The notes beneath the pieces are model-generated. The model did not search any database and was not told the origin of the DNA. It saw nothing but the letters and a program-made list of their open reading frames with translations. DNA of 64,000 nucleotides, from IMG/VR virus record IMGVR_UViG_3300005965_000002, positions 1 through 64,000 of that record. One strand, written 5' to 3'. Positions 2,611 to 61,972 of this stretch are shown piece after piece (the first letter of the stretch is position 1; every line of letters begins with the position of its first letter). Made by a program: the position numbers and the translations under genes.

Positions 2611-2924
2611 TTATATCTTACCGTGCTTGTTTTCCCATTCTTCCCGGAACCTTCTAGCGTACTTATTGACCCATTCTTCACAAGCTTCTTCATCTAGGTC
2701 TCTTCCTTCTTGTTCACTTCTGATCCATTTATACTTCTCGATTTCTTCTATTTCATCCTTCATAAACTTGAAATATTTGCTGTCAGGATTAATAGGAGAA
2801 GGAGGGAAGCTGTCGTCCTTACAGCATATACCAGTAGATCCCTTTAAACACGGCATCGATACTCCCCTGTATATTGGTGCCTGAGGGGGGACTTGAACCC
2901 CCACACCTTTCGGCACTAGATCCT

Positions 2925-3716
2925 CTTACTACTCCTAGTTTCCCAGGCCCTCTCGGTTGTAGTCTGGACTATATCTTCACCCTCAGTTTTACCTGTAGGG
3001 GCCTGACGTATAGTCTCTGAGGGGTCACTAAGACTTCCCTGCGGATTGCCGATTATTATCCATACAGATTTTTACTAATAATCTGCTAATAAGTTGGCAG
3101 ACTCATAGTACTGTAGGCTTTACGGGTTTCCCGCATATAGTCAGGTTTCACGCTCCCAATTACTTGAAAGGTGCTCAGGATATGAAGAACATTTCAAAAG
3201 AACTTCTTAAAAAATACTATCTACAGCAAAAACTTACACCCTATAAAATAGGAGAACTCTTTGGAGTTAACCACAAAACTGTAAGGAGCTACTTAAAAAA
3301 ATACCAAATACCCATGCGTACTGCCTCAGAATATAATTTTTTAGCCCGTAAGAGTCATACAAGACCCGACAAAAAAAAGTTACAAAGTAAATTATCCATT
3401 GCCGGGCATTCTGCTTTTCTTTGTGAAGGTTGGCATACAGAAAAAACAAATGCTTTTTATTTCTGTAATACAGATCCCGCCCTCATTCTTTTGGTCCTTA
3501 ATACGCTAAAAAGGATTTATCAAGTTAAAAGAATCGCTATACAAATAATAGCTAAAGAAAAAACAGGAACTAAAAAATTATTTGATATCTTTCCAGAAGC
3601 CTCCTTTATTGTTGAAAAAGATAGAAAAACTCCTATAGTTCGCCTTAGGTGTGGGGGTAAAAATCTTGCTAGAGAAGTAATAGAAAATTCTTACAGAATA
3701 GTTACTTCACTTTACT
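2925..3716 (-). ncRNA. group I intron (792 nt) in anticodon of tRNA-Leu(TAG)
   Basis: Inserted after U34, ends in G; core elements TCAGAGACTA and AAGATATAGTCC present. Confidence 0.9.
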
Positions 3717-3718
3717 AA
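3182..3718 (+). CDS. HTH + LAGLIDADG-like homing endonuclease encoded antisense inside the intron
   Basis: N-terminal HTH (LTPYKIGELFGVNHKTVRSYL), then AFLCEG...F.NTDP.LI motif; ATG at 3182 preferred over TTG at 3164. Confidence 0.65.
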   Translation: MKNISKELLKKYYLQQKLTPYKIGELFGVNHKTVRSYLKKYQIPMRTASEYNFLARKSHTRPDKKKLQSKLSIAGHSAFLCEGWHTEKTNAFYFCNTDPALILLVLNTLKRIYQVKRIAIQIIAKEKTGTKKLFDIFPEASFIVEKDRKTPIVRLRCGGKNLAREVIENSYRIVTSLY

Positions 3719-3802
3719 GTCTAGCGTGTCTGCCGTTCCACCACTCAGGCATGTAAACCTCGTTAACAATATACTTATCTGTTTTTACTATTTAAACTAC
3801 AG

Positions 3803-4550: not shown

Positions 4551-4575
4551 TTCGTTATTTGCTCCTAATAAAAAA

Positions 4576-4797
4576 AGCGGGGGGTGGGATTCGAACCCAC
4601 AGCGATTATCCCTAACCGGATTATTTTTCAGACGCTAGGGTTTCCGTTATTACGGTTCCTCATCATTGTTCGGGCTATAGCTAGCTCTGTTCAGGCCCGA
4701 ACCCAGGTAGAGGCGTGCAACCGGTCTCGCTTAACCCGGTCAGTTTGTTTTCTCCCGAACCTGGATGGGAGGCGTCTACCAATTCCGCCACCCCCGC
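4576..4797 (-). ncRNA. 222-nt tRNA-like RNA with ~140-nt structured insertion
   Basis: Acceptor GCGGGGG/CCCCCGC, Leu-type D arm, canonical T arm; several hairpins between anticodon-like arm and T arm. Confidence 0.75.
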
Positions 4798-4854
4798 TTA
4801 TTACTATAATATACCAATTCTATGGATGTTTTTAAAAAAATTATTAACAAATAA

Positions 4855-11731: not shown

Positions 11732-12406
11732 TAAAGAATGATTGTTTTGCTTTCTCTACAAGTTTCTTCCAAACGGTTGTACTCAGTTTTGGGTACTGTC
11801 TGTGTGCGGTACTGATGATATGAGGCGATACCCATTCCAAGAAGAAGGATGCTGAGGAGAGCAGCACTTATGAATAAGCCATCACCTGACGTGGCTGCTA
11901 AAGCTACTGAAAGAATGACAATAAAAAAGAGGAAAGAGATAACTATTACTAAAAAAATAGGTAGCATACTAGTCCTTTTTTGAGGCGTCGCGCTTATAGA
12001 TATCACATTTAGATATACCACATTTGCTGATGCCCTCTAGTGTTCTTTGTTCCAGGTCAGAATAGTCTTCCCACGGAATAATCGGGGTAAATGATTCTTT
12101 GGCTTTCTTCCCCATCTCAGTACGGCTTTGAATATTTTCTATGTTAGGCTTATCCAATGTTATTCCTTTACTTCTCCTGAAAATATGTGATTGTCGCATT
12201 TAACTACATCATCTTGACAGGTATCTTTTAGTACCGGATGATGCCCTCTAAATTCAGGATTGCTCATGCATTTAGGCCATTTATCAGTATGGTCACACAT
12301 AATGCATAAATTAGGTAATGTAGCTAATTCATTCATAAATACTTCCTGAAAAAATGGTACTCGGGACGAGATTCGAACTCGTACGGGGTTACCCCCAATG
12401 GATTTT

Positions 12407-13174
12407 CTTACTACTCTTGCTTTCACAAGCCGCTATAACGTTGTAGTCTGGACTATATCATCTCCTTAGTAAAACCTTAGGAGGGACGTGCATAGTCTCT
12501 GAACCTTCCCCATTTTAAAGGGGCTCGGCTGCTGATTACCCAATCTCTGATAGTTTTTTAACTTTCACACCCGCTGTTTTCAGCCATGTTGTAGTCATCT
12601 GAGCTATAAGGGCTTTCCAGCAATTCTCGTCCTGCTCACCTATTGATTTCTCAATAAGGGCTCTTTGATCCCTTATAAAAAAGTGAAGCCTGCCATGCTG
12701 CATCCTACTAATAATTATCATGTTACTTAAAGAGTTGTCTTTTATATCACCGTTAATATGATGAATAACTTCGTTATAAGAAAGTTTTCTCTTCAAAACT
12801 TGTTCAGCTATTACCCGGTGTATATCTTTAGAACTTCCTTTAAGTTTATTGTAATTACCAGTAGCATTGTTACCTATTTTTGAGACTTTTCTATAGCATT
12901 CTAAACAGTACTTTTGGTCTTTGTGGTTTAGCTTAATTTTTTTAGTGCATAAAACACAAAATCCCCAACCGTATCTATTTTTGTAAGCCGCTCCTCCTTT
13001 TTGAAGATAAAAATATTTACGTCTTTCTAGGTAACAAGGATTACAGTATCGTCTTCCTTTTGTTGGCGGGATCTTTTTACATTTAACACAAAGCCTCTCC
13101 ATAATAACTCCTTTTATTGGAAGGACCAATATTAGGAGATTATGGTGGACACAACGTGTCAAGTGTAAAAAACA
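12407..13174 (-). ncRNA. group I intron (768 nt) in anticodon of tRNA-Leu(TAA)
   Basis: After U34, ends ...AGTAGTAAG; TCAGAGACTA and GATATAGTCC core elements. Confidence 0.9.
12536..13102 (-). CDS. intron-encoded HNH homing endonuclease with zinc fingers
   Basis: HRVIAE..L.R.L...EVIHHING...DN...N motif; CxxC pairs; start at ATG 13102 with RBS GGAG. Confidence 0.85.
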   Translation of the reverse strand: MERLCVKCKKIPPTKGRRYCNPCYLERRKYFYLQKGGAAYKNRYGWGFCVLCTKKIKLNHKDQKYCLECYRKVSKIGNNATGNYNKLKGSSKDIHRVIAEQVLKRKLSYNEVIHHINGDIKDNSLSNMIIISRMQHGRLHFFIRDQRALIEKSIGEQDENCWKALIAQMTTTWLKTAGVKVKKLSEIG

Positions 13175-13268
13175 AAGTCCACAGTGTCTACCATTCCACC
13201 ACCCGAGCATGTCAAAGATCATCTCATATGAATATACTCCTTTGATTATTCTAATTAAAGTAAAAAAG

Positions 13269-30807: not shown

Positions 30808-30968
30808 TTTAATACTCTACTTTATCCGTCTCAAAGGATATACCAGTTTTTTTGACGATAACAGTTACCTGTATATGCTTTAAAGGGATTGGTAAAGGCG
30901 GTAAATAAATGTCTTTTCTATACGGATCATATCTTTTAATCGAAGGAACGAATGGTAACAGTTTTAAG

Positions 30969-31041
30969 CGCCCCCGAAAGGATTCGAACCTTTGACTGAC
31001 TGGTTTTAGGGACCACTCCTCTACCACTGAGGTACGGGGGC
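30969..31041 (-). tRNA. putative amber-suppressor tRNA (anticodon CTA), Trp-like anticodon arm
   Basis: TGGT-CCCTAAA-ACCA; perfect acceptor GCCCCCG/CGGGGGC; G73; C33. Confidence 0.7.
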
Positions 31042-31081
31042 TGATAGTCATTAATATACCTTTGTGATATATTTATTTTAA

Positions 31082-35013: not shown

Positions 35014-35255
35014 TTAGATTATGATTTTTAGAGCACTCACAACATTTTGGATGCGGTTGATGACAGTTGTCGTACTACTCCCGGCAAAAAGAAGACCTAC
35101 GGCGTTATTTTGACCGTTAAATACCACTGACCCACTATCGCCTCCTTGGCTCATAGGTCCTGCAATAAGCTGGTCAGTAAAAACAGCCACTTTATTGGCT
35201 CCGTAGCTTACTTGTACTGTAGCATCTATCTGCTGAATAGTACCTTCTGTGTACC
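35014..35255 (-). pseudogene. C-terminal fragment of a trypsin-like serine protease
   Basis: TGYTEG..., SQGGDSGS, VGLLFAG; N-terminus replaced by IS DNA. Confidence 0.75.
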
Positions 35256-35830
35256 CGGTAGACATCCCACAGAAGAGAGCTGTCGGTGGGATAGTGGATG
35301 TTCGACTCACACACCGTGCTGTCCACCCGCAGCCTCTCGGCGGTGATCTTGCCGCTGCGCTGAGCAGCATCCAGGACAATCGCATTGATCTTTTGCCATG
35401 TCGAAGCCTGGATATGCTTGAATGCCGTACACAGCTGGTTAAAGCTCATCACCTTGCCCATGCCGATGCGGGTGAAATTGAGCAAAAAATCGCTATCTGC
35501 GATACGAATCACCGTCTCGCGGTAAGGAAGGTCTTCTATAATCATAACAATACTCATCCGCAATACCTGTTCGCTGCTATAACTGGCTCCACGCCCCTTG
35601 CTCGAGCCACATCGGCGCAGGTCTTTATGAACGACATTCAGAATCTCTGGATGCTCGTCCAGGAAGCGGTCAATCGAATCGTATTTGGCTCGGTACTCAC
35701 GAATCACCTTCTGTTCACTGAATACATTGAAGGGAAAACATGGCTGTGCGTGAACTATTTTTCTCACTGGGATGCCCTCCGTTTTCTGTAAAACCCTTTT
35801 GGTTTTTTGATCAACAGAAAAATAGGATAA
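35255..35830 (-). mobile_element. truncated IS transposase (ISNCY/IS5-like), 5' part only
   Basis: Higher GC; GR....EQVLR...YRE, RVDSTVCESNIHYPTDSSLLWD; fused out of frame to the protease fragment. Confidence 0.8.
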
Positions 35831-41106: not shown

Positions 41107-41312
41107 TATCAAAGAACAAATAAAAAACCCCGGAGAACTCTTGGTTCGCCGGGGTTTTTGATTCTCTTATTGAGCTTTAATCTAGGCCAAAAGAATCCCT
41201 CCCAACGAACCTTCTGTTCGCGGTTGTTGTGGATTAGGATTATTCTGGTTCATGATAAACATAATTTTTCCTCGTCAGTACTAATATACCCTTTTGCAGT
41301 AAAAAATACAAA
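41107..41312 (-). promoter_or_regulatory. attenuator 3: promoter TTGTAT-N17-TATATT, leader ORF 41262-41182, terminator 41159-41122, boxA-like 41118-41107
   Basis: Leader MFIMNQNNPNPQQPRTEGSLGGILLA; GGTTCGTTGGG pairs with CCCGGCGAACC. Confidence 0.88.
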
Positions 41313-45637: not shown

Positions 45638-45942
45638 TTGCCTAATATGGAAATTCTTTGGCAGACTTTAGCCAGGTTGAGCCCCTCCACATCGGATACG
45701 TCAACCCCGTAGATTTCTTCTATTTTTTTAAAGTCTTCTCTTCTGTCTCTTTGAATTCCATCTTCTGTGAGCTCAAAGTTAAAATCATCTAACGAAGATT
45801 CGTCTGTAATAAAAGATTGCTTTATTCCATAGACCCTAAATAAAAGGTCATGTGCGATATCTTTGTAAGATTCGATTTCTATTTGAGGAGCAAAGTAAAA
45901 CTTTAGTTCGGGTTTTTCTTTCTTCATAATAACCTTTATAAA

Positions 45943-45982
45943 TGGTGGGCACAGTAGGATTCGAACCTACGACCCCCTGCTT
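45943..45982 (-). pseudogene. orphan 3' half of a tRNA (Val-like)
   Basis: AAGCAGG-GGGTC-GTAGGTTCGAATCCTAC-TGTGCCC-ACCA; no matching 5' half seen. Confidence 0.7.
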
Positions 45983-46051: not shown

Positions 46052-46843
46052 ATGAAAAATTGTTTATTGTGCGGAGACCTTATTCCAAATTGGATTAAAA
46101 TAGACGGGAAAAGGAAAAATATATCCAGTCGAAAATACTGTTTAAAATGTTCGCCTTATAAAAAACACAACACAAAAAAGTTACACTTAAATAGTAACTC
46201 CGAAAAATTTAAAAAATGTAAAAGCTGCGGTAAAAAACAATCTATTGATAAATTCAGAAAAAGAACAGATAGAGAAAATTTAAGGGTGCCTTATTGTAAA
46301 AAGTGCCAAAATAAAGAGATGCTGATTAGATATAAAAAAAGACACTATAAATTAAAACTCAAAGCTGTTAAATACCTGGGCGGGAAATGTCATGTTTGTG
46401 GTTATAGTAAAAACATACATGTTTTAGACTTTCACCATAAGAACCCAAAAATTAAAAAAGGAGAATTTATAAAATTTAAAAGCGAAGCACGCATTGAGAA
46501 AGAACTAGATAGGTGCGTGTTACTTTGCTCTAACTGCCATAGGGAGCTCCACTATAATGTAAAGAGTTCTAAAATAATTAAAAAAGACACAATAAGAATA
46601 AAAAAGCTGTTGCTTAGTCTAAAGCAAAAAGCTGTTACATACCTGGGAGGGAAATGTTCTGCCTGCGGCTATAAAAAATGTATAGCCGCGCTTGAGTTTC
46701 ACCATATTTCAAAGAGCAAAGAATTTAATATATCAAAGCCTAAATCAATAGTATTTGAAAAAATAAAAACCGAATTAGATAAGTGCTCCCTATTATGCTC
46801 TAACTGTCACAGGGAAACACATCATAATAGTTGCAAAAAATAG
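46052..46843 (+). CDS. free-standing endonuclease with two HNH domains
   Basis: Two copies of GGKC..CGY....L.FHH...C.LLCSNCHRE.H. Confidence 0.88.
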   Translation: MKNCLLCGDLIPNWIKIDGKRKNISSRKYCLKCSPYKKHNTKKLHLNSNSEKFKKCKSCGKKQSIDKFRKRTDRENLRVPYCKKCQNKEMLIRYKKRHYKLKLKAVKYLGGKCHVCGYSKNIHVLDFHHKNPKIKKGEFIKFKSEARIEKELDRCVLLCSNCHRELHYNVKSSKIIKKDTIRIKKLLLSLKQKAVTYLGGKCSACGYKKCIAALEFHHISKSKEFNISKPKSIVFEKIKTELDKCSLLCSNCHRETHHNSCKK

Positions 46844-47443: not shown

Positions 47444-47977
47444 CTATAAAAATTTTTTTATGTTTATTAGCTTTCCGTGTACTTCCGCGTGGCAACTCCT
47501 GCACAAGCATATGCATTTGTTTAGTTCTTTTTTTACTTTATCTAAATTTAACAGTTTGGATTTTGATATTATATAATCTTTTTTAGAAGGTTCTAAATGA
47601 TGAAATTCCAATGCTCCATAATACTTATTATATCCACAGATTAAACACTTACCGCCTAAATACTCTACCGCTTCTTTTTTTAATTTTATTTGCCTATCTT
47701 TAGTGCTGTTGCTACAACATAATTTACAGTAAGAGCTATACCCTCCGCTCTCCCTTTTATAAAACTCATTTAACTTCTTTTTTTTGTTGCATTTTGGGCA
47801 TAGCTTTTCTGACTTAATATCGATTCCTAATTCATCCGGTACGTGTAGCTTTTTTGTGTTATGCTTTTTATAGGGAGAACACCTTAAACAATATTTTCTA
47901 GAAAATAGATACTTCCATTCACCGTTTATTTTTTGATATCCCTTAAACTCTTTATTACATTTTTTACATATTGGCAT
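47444..47977 (-). CDS. HNH endonuclease, paralog of 46052-46843
   Basis: SRKYCL.CSPYKKHNTKKLH shared; GGKCLICGY..LEFHH..CRSCHAEVH. Confidence 0.88.
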   Translation of the reverse strand: MPICKKCNKEFKGYQKINGEWKYLFSRKYCLRCSPYKKHNTKKLHVPDELGIDIKSEKLCPKCNKKKKLNEFYKRESGGYSSYCKLCCSNSTKDRQIKLKKEAVEYLGGKCLICGYNKYYGALEFHHLEPSKKDYIISKSKLLNLDKVKKELNKCICLCRSCHAEVHGKLINIKKFL

Positions 47978-61522: not shown

Positions 61523-61972
61523 TCAATTCCCCTCAATTCGGATATTAAATGTTTTTTCTATCTTTTCAGTAAGATCTTTAAAGAAAGCATCTCCAGGAAC
61601 AAAATGTACAAAAGGAGTAGTAAAATGCTCTAGGTATTTCATTGAATCATCAATATGCAGATCTATATTTTCTTTGTCACAGTAGTGGCCCTTTGTTTTA
61701 TTCCACGTACCTTCATCCATCCAGGGCGTTCCCTTTTCATCGTACCATATGTTTGTGCCCTGTTTTGTGTGGTGGTCCACTATTGAAAAAAAATGAGTAT
61801 AGCCTTTTAATAGGCCACACTCATAATTAAGTTTATAATAAATCTCTTCAGAATACTTAGCACCGGTTATAATATGTACCTGGTGACCAGCATTAATCAA
61901 AGTTTTTGTTATGGGCTGAAAAAATTTAGGGTATGCTTCAACAACACCGTGAAAATCTAATCCAAGCTTCAT
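61523..61972 (-). CDS. HAD-superfamily-like protein
   Basis: LGLDFHGV, IITG, HIDDS. Confidence 0.65.
   Translation of the reverse strand: MKLGLDFHGVVEAYPKFFQPITKTLINAGHQVHIITGAKYSEEIYYKLNYECGLLKGYTHFFSIVDHHTKQGTNIWYDEKGTPWMDEGTWNKTKGHYCDKENIDLHIDDSMKYLEHFTTPFVHFVPGDAFFKDLTEKIEKTFNIRIEGN

Follow-up and report, generated by a model that had tools for sequence, protein, structure and literature searches.

Putative leader-peptide attenuators in front of the tRNA operons of a huge phage

Ribosome-mediated attenuation has been described for amino-acid operons (thr, ilvGMEDA, ilvBN, his, leu, trp, pheA) and for pheST in Proteobacteria, all described members controlling amino-acid biosynthesis or aminoacyl-tRNA synthetase genes. 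In these systems a promoter and a Shine-Dalgarno site precede a short ORF with a run of regulatory codons, followed by mutually exclusive antiterminator and terminator hairpins and a U tract, and several amino acids are sensed by one leader in the case of thr and ilv. T-box riboswitches also read the state of a specific tRNA and control translation-related genes by transcription attenuation, but they bind the uncharged tRNA directly, through a specifier codon and the T-box sequence, without a ribosome. In contrast, bacterial and phage tRNA genes are generally regarded as controlled at the promoter (growth-rate and stringent control) and by processing. Phage-encoded tRNAs are known to replace depleted or cleaved host tRNAs, for example when viral tRNAs rescue infection from PARIS (bioRxiv 10.1101/2024.01.02.573894; see also the AriB study, PMC12409363). 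As far as their titles and abstracts indicate, these studies concern tRNA content and sequence, and do not describe a supply-sensing control of tRNA gene transcription.

The locus analysed here has the anatomy of a leader-peptide attenuator, yet the genes following it are tRNA genes and phage ORFs. It lies in a 64,000-nucleotide stretch (hereafter the window), which is the first 64 kb of a 258,580-base IMG/VR virus record (IMGVR_UViG_3300005965_000002) rated 55% complete by CheckV. The contig encodes a large terminase, a portal and a prohead protease, and near-identical DNA occurs in hypersaline-lake and microbial-mat metagenomes. ARAGORN finds 37 tRNA genes, all on the minus strand between 2 and 59.3 kb, and none elsewhere on the contig. 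Allowing introns adds tRNA-Leu-TAA and tRNA-Leu-TAG, each split by a group I intron that is also detected by Rfam. The island encodes in addition a CCA-adding enzyme, PRPP synthetase and many small ORFs. In a greedy, non-overlapping pick of open frames of at least 70 codons, 82 of 92 lie on the minus strand.

The Asn/Gln/Pro leader and its predicted RNA folds

A sequence-only reading had proposed an attenuator whose leader holds ten consecutive codons read by six downstream tRNAs (Asn x2, Gln x2, Pro x2), with an 11-bp antiterminator and a boxA-like site directly after the T tract. All these elements are confirmed on the minus strand (Table 1, cassette C3), and the interpretation is supported, although entirely by computation. 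A sigma-70-like promoter and a Shine-Dalgarno site, six nucleotides before the ATG, precede the 26-codon ORF, and by standard wobble rules the six tRNAs read all ten codons. The corresponding 8-codon set has a background frequency of about 0.12, and this 12-codon window is the single best for that set in all six frames of the contig. In a blind scan of the 400 nt upstream of every tRNA, it gives P = 4e-10, or 2e-6 after correction for 5491 windows. The extent of the regulated transcript is inferred only; the two Pro tRNAs lie 2.8 and 6.2 kb downstream, beyond several ORFs. More generally, the presumed operons are long, hold many ORFs and may have internal promoters.

Table 1. Positions of the cassette features in the window (all on the minus strand; each full leader peptide is followed by a stop codon)
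Cassette	Feature	Position	Sequence or content
C3	Promoter-like site	41311-41283	-35 TTGTAT (41311-41306), 17-nt spacer, -10 TATATT (41288-41283) inside GGTATATTA; A-tract upstream (to 41321)
C3	Shine-Dalgarno	41273-41269	GAGGA
C3	Leader ORF	41262-41182	MFIMNQNNPNPQQPRTEGSLGGILLA
C3	Regulatory codons 5-14 (segment 1)	41250-41221	AAC CAG AAT AAT CCT AAT CCA CAA CAA CCG (Asn x4, Gln x3, Pro x3)
C3	Segment 2	41211-41187	
C3	Antiterminator, 5' strand (first 11 nt of segment 2)	41211-41201	GGUUCGUUGGG
C3	Intrinsic terminator (segments 3 and 4)	41159-41122	AAAAACCCCGG-C-GAAC / GTTC-T-CCGGGGTTTTTT; T tract 41127-41122
C3	Antiterminator, 3' strand (shared with the terminator)	41153-41143	CCCGGCGAACC
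C3	boxA-like site	41118-41104	TGTTCTTTGATATCT
C3	Presumed regulated unit	41082-34939	tRNA-Asn-GTT 41082-41008, Gln-CTG 41001-40926, Asn-GTT 40511-40435, Gln-TTG 40235-40156, Pro-GGG 38404-38327, Pro-TGG 35013-34939, with interspersed ORFs
C1	Whole cassette	59785-59593	Downstream tRNAs: Glu-TTC, Glu-CTC, Gly-GCC, Met, Gly-TCC, Thr-CGT, Arg-CCT, Arg-TCT
C1	Promoter	59785-59755	
C1	Leader	59725-59657	MIATTTIRIEGREGEGEGTIMS
C1	Terminator	59630-59593	
C2	Whole cassette	48638-48430	Downstream tRNAs: Lys-TTT, Lys-CTT, Arg-ACG, Val-TAC, Arg-CCG
C2	Promoter	48638-48608	
C2	Leader	48569-48486	MLMIVKKVKVVVKRRKGSHRGEFRLFI
C2	Terminator	48462-48430	
C4	Whole cassette	24305-24082	Downstream tRNAs: Phe, Asp, Asp, Ser-GCT
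C4	Promoter	24305-24275	
C4	Leader	24242-24147	MTIVTSIFIISMSAIDFDSGDDIMPGRGSRR
C4	Terminator	24124-24082	
C5	Whole cassette	14716-14475	Downstream tRNAs: Cys, Leu x5, Tyr, Ala x3, Trp, His, Thr x2, Ser-GGA
C5	Promoter	14716-14686	
C5	Leader	14656-14540	MKSTSSTLQSLHTVLTSAAWTLLYSYLCANTIVAGRNF
C5	Terminator	14510-14475	
	Amber-suppressor-type tRNA	31041-30968	Same -10 motif directly upstream, no leader

The 143-nt leader transcript folds far better than shuffles (-48.7 kcal/mol, z = -5.9). In this full-length fold the regulatory codons pair with segment 2 (1:2) and the terminator, of about -17 to -24 kcal/mol, is formed (3:4). If the 3' arm of the terminator is withheld and a ribosome is placed on the regulatory codons, the antiterminator forms instead, with 11 bp including two G-U pairs. 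It closes a nested hairpin and reaches -27.4 kcal/mol, against -15.7 +/- 2.8 for 300 dinucleotide shuffles, none of which is as stable. With the ribosome at the stop codon nothing stable remains. The regulatory run ends 10 nt before segment 2, which fits the classical scheme. Of note, the antiterminator 5' strand of C3 and C2 lies 17-26 nt upstream of the stop codon and would not be covered directly by a ribosome parked there, so that the switch in these two cassettes has to rest on kinetics, the ribosome passing over this strand while the terminator is being made. In C1, C4 and C5, the stop codon lies within or next to segment 2. Without a ribosome, the truncated transcript still prefers the antiterminator in most cassettes, and a trp-like 1:2 protector is seen clearly only in full-length folds.

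The boxA-like site follows the T tract directly. Its core TGTTCTTTGA resembles the bacterial boxA consensus, which is probably TGCTCTTTAACAA in E. coli and TGTTCTTTGAAAA-like in many other bacteria, and it sits, as in rRNA operons, at the start of an untranslated, structured-RNA transcription unit. The exact motif occurs only in tRNA spacers, in the window at 41118 and 47369, and in two relatives presented below (L011 and L018). It is conserved at the same position, after the terminator, in the first cassette of L018, whose CCA-adding enzyme is only 56% identical, and a GATCTTTGAAAA variant lies after the terminator of another huge phage (G009). A Nus-type site would suit an untranslated unit, but no boxB or boxC was seen, and the same letters could serve as the -35 element (TTGATA or TTGACA) of a secondary promoter.

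Taken together, these features are most likely those of a ribosome-mediated transcription attenuator (probability of about 0.8), in the absence of transcript, 3'-end or ribosome data. In the proposed mechanism, the host RNA polymerase starts at the TTGTAT/TATATT promoter, and a ribosome translates the leader close behind it. When aminoacyl-tRNAs for the Asn, Gln and Pro codons are plentiful, the ribosome would run through segment 2 to the stop codon, the antiterminator could not form, and transcription would end at about 41122. When any of them is scarce, the ribosome would stall within the ten-codon run, leaving segment 2 free to pair with the 5' arm of the terminator, and the polymerase would read on into the tRNA genes. 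Since the output is tRNA, this would amount to a negative feedback on decoding capacity, with OR logic over all codons in the run. The scarcity could arise from a mismatch between host tRNA pool and phage codon usage, from host shut-off, or from tRNA-targeting defence, the phage-tRNA literature making the last attractive (bioRxiv 10.1101/2024.01.02.573894; PMC12409363).

The locus would work like the multivalent thr and ilv leaders, but it differs from them in the nature of the presumed regulated genes, in the number of amino acids sensed in one leader (up to nine), in a codon choice resolved to the isoacceptor level, and in the partition of a phage tRNA island by five to six cassettes. The best Rfam hit on the cassette is the His operon leader over its full length (His_leader, 25 bits, E = 0.028), below the gathering threshold of 49. 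No leader family reaches its threshold in the window, and no T-box was found by the Rfam scan of the window, the sensor being here a putatively translated ORF. E. coli pheV has no leader, its upstream region holding only promoter-like sequence. No report of leader-peptide control of tRNA genes was found by full-text literature searches, and a broad survey of attenuation lists no tRNA genes (PMC2965389).

Five cassettes in one tRNA island

Interestingly, the same design recurs four more times in the window (Table 1). The motif TTTG(A/T)A-N16-GGTATATTA is shared by all five cassettes, and each short ORF is followed by a strong terminator. Strong hairpins at 61793 and 55207 lie inside ORFs and are not cassettes. 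Each leader is written in codons of the tRNAs lying between it and the next cassette, as in C1 and in the stretches MLMIVKKVKVVVKRRK... of C2, MFIMNQNNPNPQQP... of C3, ...SIFIISMSAIDFDSGDD... of C4 and MKSTSSTLQSLHTVLTSAAWTLLYSYLCA... of C5. The matching codons amount to 12/21 in C1, 11/26 in C2, 10/25 in C3, 10/30 in C4 and 24/37 in C5, a share of 0.33-0.65, against 0-0.29 for the other operons. Each leader is individually significant against the codon usage of the phage (binomial P from 5e-3 to 2e-5), the best 12-codon windows giving 7e-4 to 2e-8. The true leader-operon pairing is the first of 120 permutations (2.38, against 1.84 for the next best and a mean of 0.86), and leaders C1, C2 and C3 are the single best windows for their own codon sets in six frames of the 258.6-kb contig. 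Leaders nevertheless contain unmatched codons. Ile codons are common, yet no tRNA-Ile lies on this 55%-complete contig.

The match also holds at the isoacceptor level. Within the regulatory runs, AGR codons are used in leaders before Arg-TCT/CCT operons (4 of 4, in C1 and in the second L018 cassette), and CGN codons before Arg-ACG/CCG operons (9 of 9, two in C2 and seven in the third L018 cassette). Three Arg codons outside the runs break this rule, namely CGT at codon 2 of the second L018 leader and two AGG in the 3' antiterminator part of C2. Serine behaves likewise, with AGY before Ser-GCT in C4 and TCN before Ser-GGA in C5. The C5 leader uses CTA, TTG, CTG, TTA and CTC, one codon for each of its five Leu tRNAs.

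It could be argued that the short ORFs encode functional micropeptides, or match by chance, the terminators merely ending upstream operons. Nothing specific supports this view, apart from the abundance of short ORFs in AT-rich DNA, and it is very unlikely given the permutation, genome-wide and blind-scan statistics. Moreover, each cassette has its own promoter immediately upstream, and the peptide sequences diverge freely between related phages while their composition stays within the amino-acid set of the operon.

Antiterminators were found in all five cassettes, using the 5' arm of the terminator and a strand inside, or overlapping the end of, the leader ORF. In the ten cassettes of the window and its relatives that were folded systematically, they reach -18 to -31 kcal/mol and engage 8-11 nt of the terminator 5' arm (z = -1.6 to -6.1 against shuffles), and in eight of the ten at most 2 of 300 shuffles are as stable. 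C4, not included in this series, shows one in a separate fold. These antiterminators vanish when a ribosome is placed at the stop codon.

Covariation of leaders and tRNA content in other huge phages

Most anchors used to search for relatives gave little. The 245-aa ORF upstream of C3 has no relative among the viral contigs searched and only itself in the protein collection, and none was found with PRPP synthetase. The large terminase retrieved one 21-kb contig without tRNAs, and topoisomerase IA one 40%-identical contig without tRNAs, while GenBank phages gave only tRNA-level matches. The CCA-adding enzyme proved more useful, with hundreds of relatives at 50-60% identity, some on contigs of several hundred kb, although most of its loci (L013-L016 and nearly all of L023-L079) have no tRNAs nearby.

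An 87% relative, L010, carries C4 and C5. The promoter, UTR, 3' end of the leader and terminator are nearly identical to those of the window, while the regulatory codon stretch is rewritten with indels. Its tRNA block reads Phe, Met, Met, Ile, Asp, Asp, Ser-GCT, and its leader ...SFIEGDSIDFDRFMDDIM, which also explains the orphan Ile and Met codons of the C4 leader in the window. The Phe gene of the window, the first tRNA after C4, looks like a deletion chimera whose 3' half equals the tRNA-Ile of L010. A change in the terminator 5' arm (GCCGAG to GCTGAG) is matched by CTCAGCGGGG in the antiterminator strand. In C5, the substitutions stay within the amino acids of the operon (YSYLC becomes YSCLY).

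More distant phages show the same architecture. L011, a 56% relative on a 314-kb contig, has the leader MIRTFNNQPNNPQPGDNLLG, with NNQPNNPQP, and a terminator, before Asn x2, Gln x2 and Pro x3 within 900 nt. L012/L018, also a 56% relative, has three cassettes with different groupings, namely NNAATEANGTEG before Asn, Glu, Thr, Ala and Gly, RSMHLRSSH..LSLSLCSYFIMLS before Phe, Leu, Ser, Cys, His, Met, Tyr, Ile and Arg-AGR, and VRRVKRDRIDRWVKRDR before Lys, Arg-CGN, Val, Asp, Trp and Met. In that phage Asp and Trp sit in the Lys/Arg/Val operon, and D and W codons appear in its leader. Among the huge phages reached through IMG/VR, G009 has LYSYFSCSSLWSLS (MNKLYSYFSCSSLWSLS...) with a classical terminator. 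The G006 leader LLSVSLFNVSCYSNSNY, in (M)KQLLSVSLFNVSCYSNSNYW..., is only suggestive (0.13 after correction for the windows tested).

The same hardware might have evolved to read the amino-acid or translation state of the host, as in the trp, his and ilv leaders, rather than tRNA abundance, and the cassettes would then gate whole early or middle gene blocks. A stalled ribosome senses aminoacyl-tRNA and cannot tell a lack of tRNA from a lack of amino acid, the units hold many protein genes besides tRNAs, and raising tRNA output would not help if the stall were caused by amino-acid starvation. This alternative looks unlikely, however, because leader composition tracks the tRNA content of each block down to isoacceptor codons and changes when tRNAs move between blocks in other phages, and nothing in the blocks makes the corresponding amino acids. 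It appears more likely than not that a clade of huge phages runs its tRNA supply on demand, each operon carrying a translated barcode of the codons its tRNAs decode, and only the operons whose tRNAs are short being switched on. This would be the first case of tRNA genes under leader-peptide attenuation, and a built-in sensor of tRNA depletion, including that caused by anticodon nucleases and other tRNA-targeting defences. It would explain how a phage with about 40 tRNA genes avoids making those it does not need, and why tRNA genes are grouped by amino acid in these phages. Such cassettes would be compact, codon-specific sensors of tRNA supply for almost every amino acid, useful for synthetic biology and for measuring translation stress, and the concordance test used here gives a simple rule for finding such leaders in metagenomic phage genomes.

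G005, a complete 412-kb genome, is a different case. It has three strongly matched leaders (QQRQQREQERERRQQRR; 17 of 18 codons in MYQQRQQREQERERRQQRR), which have no U-tract terminator and end only 15-48 nt before the first tRNA. The output step is thus not uniform across phages, and the leaders could be translated but act otherwise than by hairpin competition, for example by blocking Rho loading, by altering RNase P or RNase E processing of the adjacent tRNA, or by stabilising the transcript, the terminators being then constitutive partial stops. A second D/F/S-rich mini-ORF, which runs into tRNA-Phe after the C4 terminator and is conserved in L010, is in line with this idea. It remains unlikely as a general explanation, since in the window, L010, L011, L018, G009 and G006 every cassette has a strong terminator, together with an antiterminator overlapping the end of the ORF, in most cases far better than shuffles.

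The blind scan found nothing significant in the huge phages G002, G003, G008 and G010, nor in three unrelated tRNA-rich phages, Aeromonas avDM6, Agrobacterium OLIVR5 and Rhodobacter RcXuper. The scan therefore does not fire on just any tRNA array, and among the phages examined the trait is lineage-restricted. Metagenomic DNA reads from two runs showed a roughly 92%-identical relative, with a well-supported change in the C3 cassette (41300 T>C). Recoding of TAG by the CTA tRNA was also considered and not retained, TAG still ending 28 of 189 long frames.

Further tRNA genes

Two of the leucine tRNA genes, tRNA-Leu-TAA and tRNA-Leu-TAG, are each interrupted in the anticodon loop by a group I intron of about 770–790 nt (Rfam RF00028), and both were missed by ARAGORN with default settings. 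An amber-suppressor-type tRNA (anticodon CTA, called Pyl by ARAGORN) has its own GGTATATTA promoter and no leader. Since TAG still ends 28 of 189 long open frames, there is no clear sign of stop-codon recoding. A 224-nt tRNA-like gene of unknown identity, with a matching acceptor stem and T arm, also has its own GGTATATTA promoter. It is called Trp-CCA with a 147-nt intron by ARAGORN, which is doubtful.

Coordinates of the additional features (window unless another locus is named)
Feature	Position	Strand
tRNA-Leu-TAA; group I intron match (RF00028)	12355-13208; 12433-12677	-
tRNA-Leu-TAG; group I intron match (RF00028)	2875-3750; 2944-3239	-
Amber-suppressor-type tRNA with its promoter	30968-31062	-
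tRNA-like gene, 224 nt, with its promoter	4575-4820	-
tRNA-Phe; corresponding place in L010	23954-24033; L010 1958-2299	-; 
Second mini-ORF after the C4 terminator; counterpart in L010	24074-24009; L010 from about 1922	-; 
Orphan tRNA 3' half and two HNH-like endonuclease ORFs	about 45935-45975, 46052-46843, 47444-47977	-, +, -
GC-rich stretch with transposase-like open frames	35014-35791	both
G005 leaders	L084 15033-15116; L085 803-922 and 3556-3615	
GTTCTTTGA-type motifs, window	47369-47360, 14302, 13221	-
GTTCTTTGA-type motifs, relatives	L011 8025; L018 7743 and 9123	

Possible rearrangements and insertions in the tRNA island

The tRNA-Phe gene following leader C4 scores low (42.6 bits), and its 3' half is identical to the 3' half of tRNA-Ile in L010, an 87% relative, which has Phe, Met, Met, Ile at this place. 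The gene looks like a deletion chimera, which would explain the Ile and Met codons left in leader C4, and no tRNA-Ile is found on the contig. Of note, a second mini-ORF with a GGAGG site lies right after the C4 terminator. It reads MMGDSDFSGFKINLRP..., is rich in Asp, Phe and Ser codons, and runs into the tRNA-Phe gene; its DSDFSGF stretch is conserved in the relative. This mini-ORF is unexplained.

Inside the Lys/Arg/Val tRNA block, an orphan tRNA 3' half (T arm, acceptor strand and CCA) lies beside two HNH-like endonuclease ORFs, which suggests homing-endonuclease traffic in the array. The GC-rich stretch lies next to tRNA-Pro-TGG and its composition is unlike the rest of the island, so that it may be an insertion inside the presumed C3 unit.

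Leaders of G005 and spacer motifs

In G005, a complete 412-kb phage, three leaders (in loci L084 and L085) match their tRNA blocks very strongly, with up to 17 of 18 codons, and share a TTGACA-N17-(C/T)A(G/A)(A/T)CT promoter. These leaders end 15–48 nt before the first tRNA with no U-tract terminator, and represent a variant whose output step is unknown.

Interestingly, GTTCTTTGA-type motifs recur in spacers directly before or after tRNA genes, in the window as well as in L011 and L018, two 56% relatives. One of them lies only 6 nt before tRNA-Lys-CTT, where a promoter makes little sense, which argues for an RNA-level role (boxA or a processing signal).
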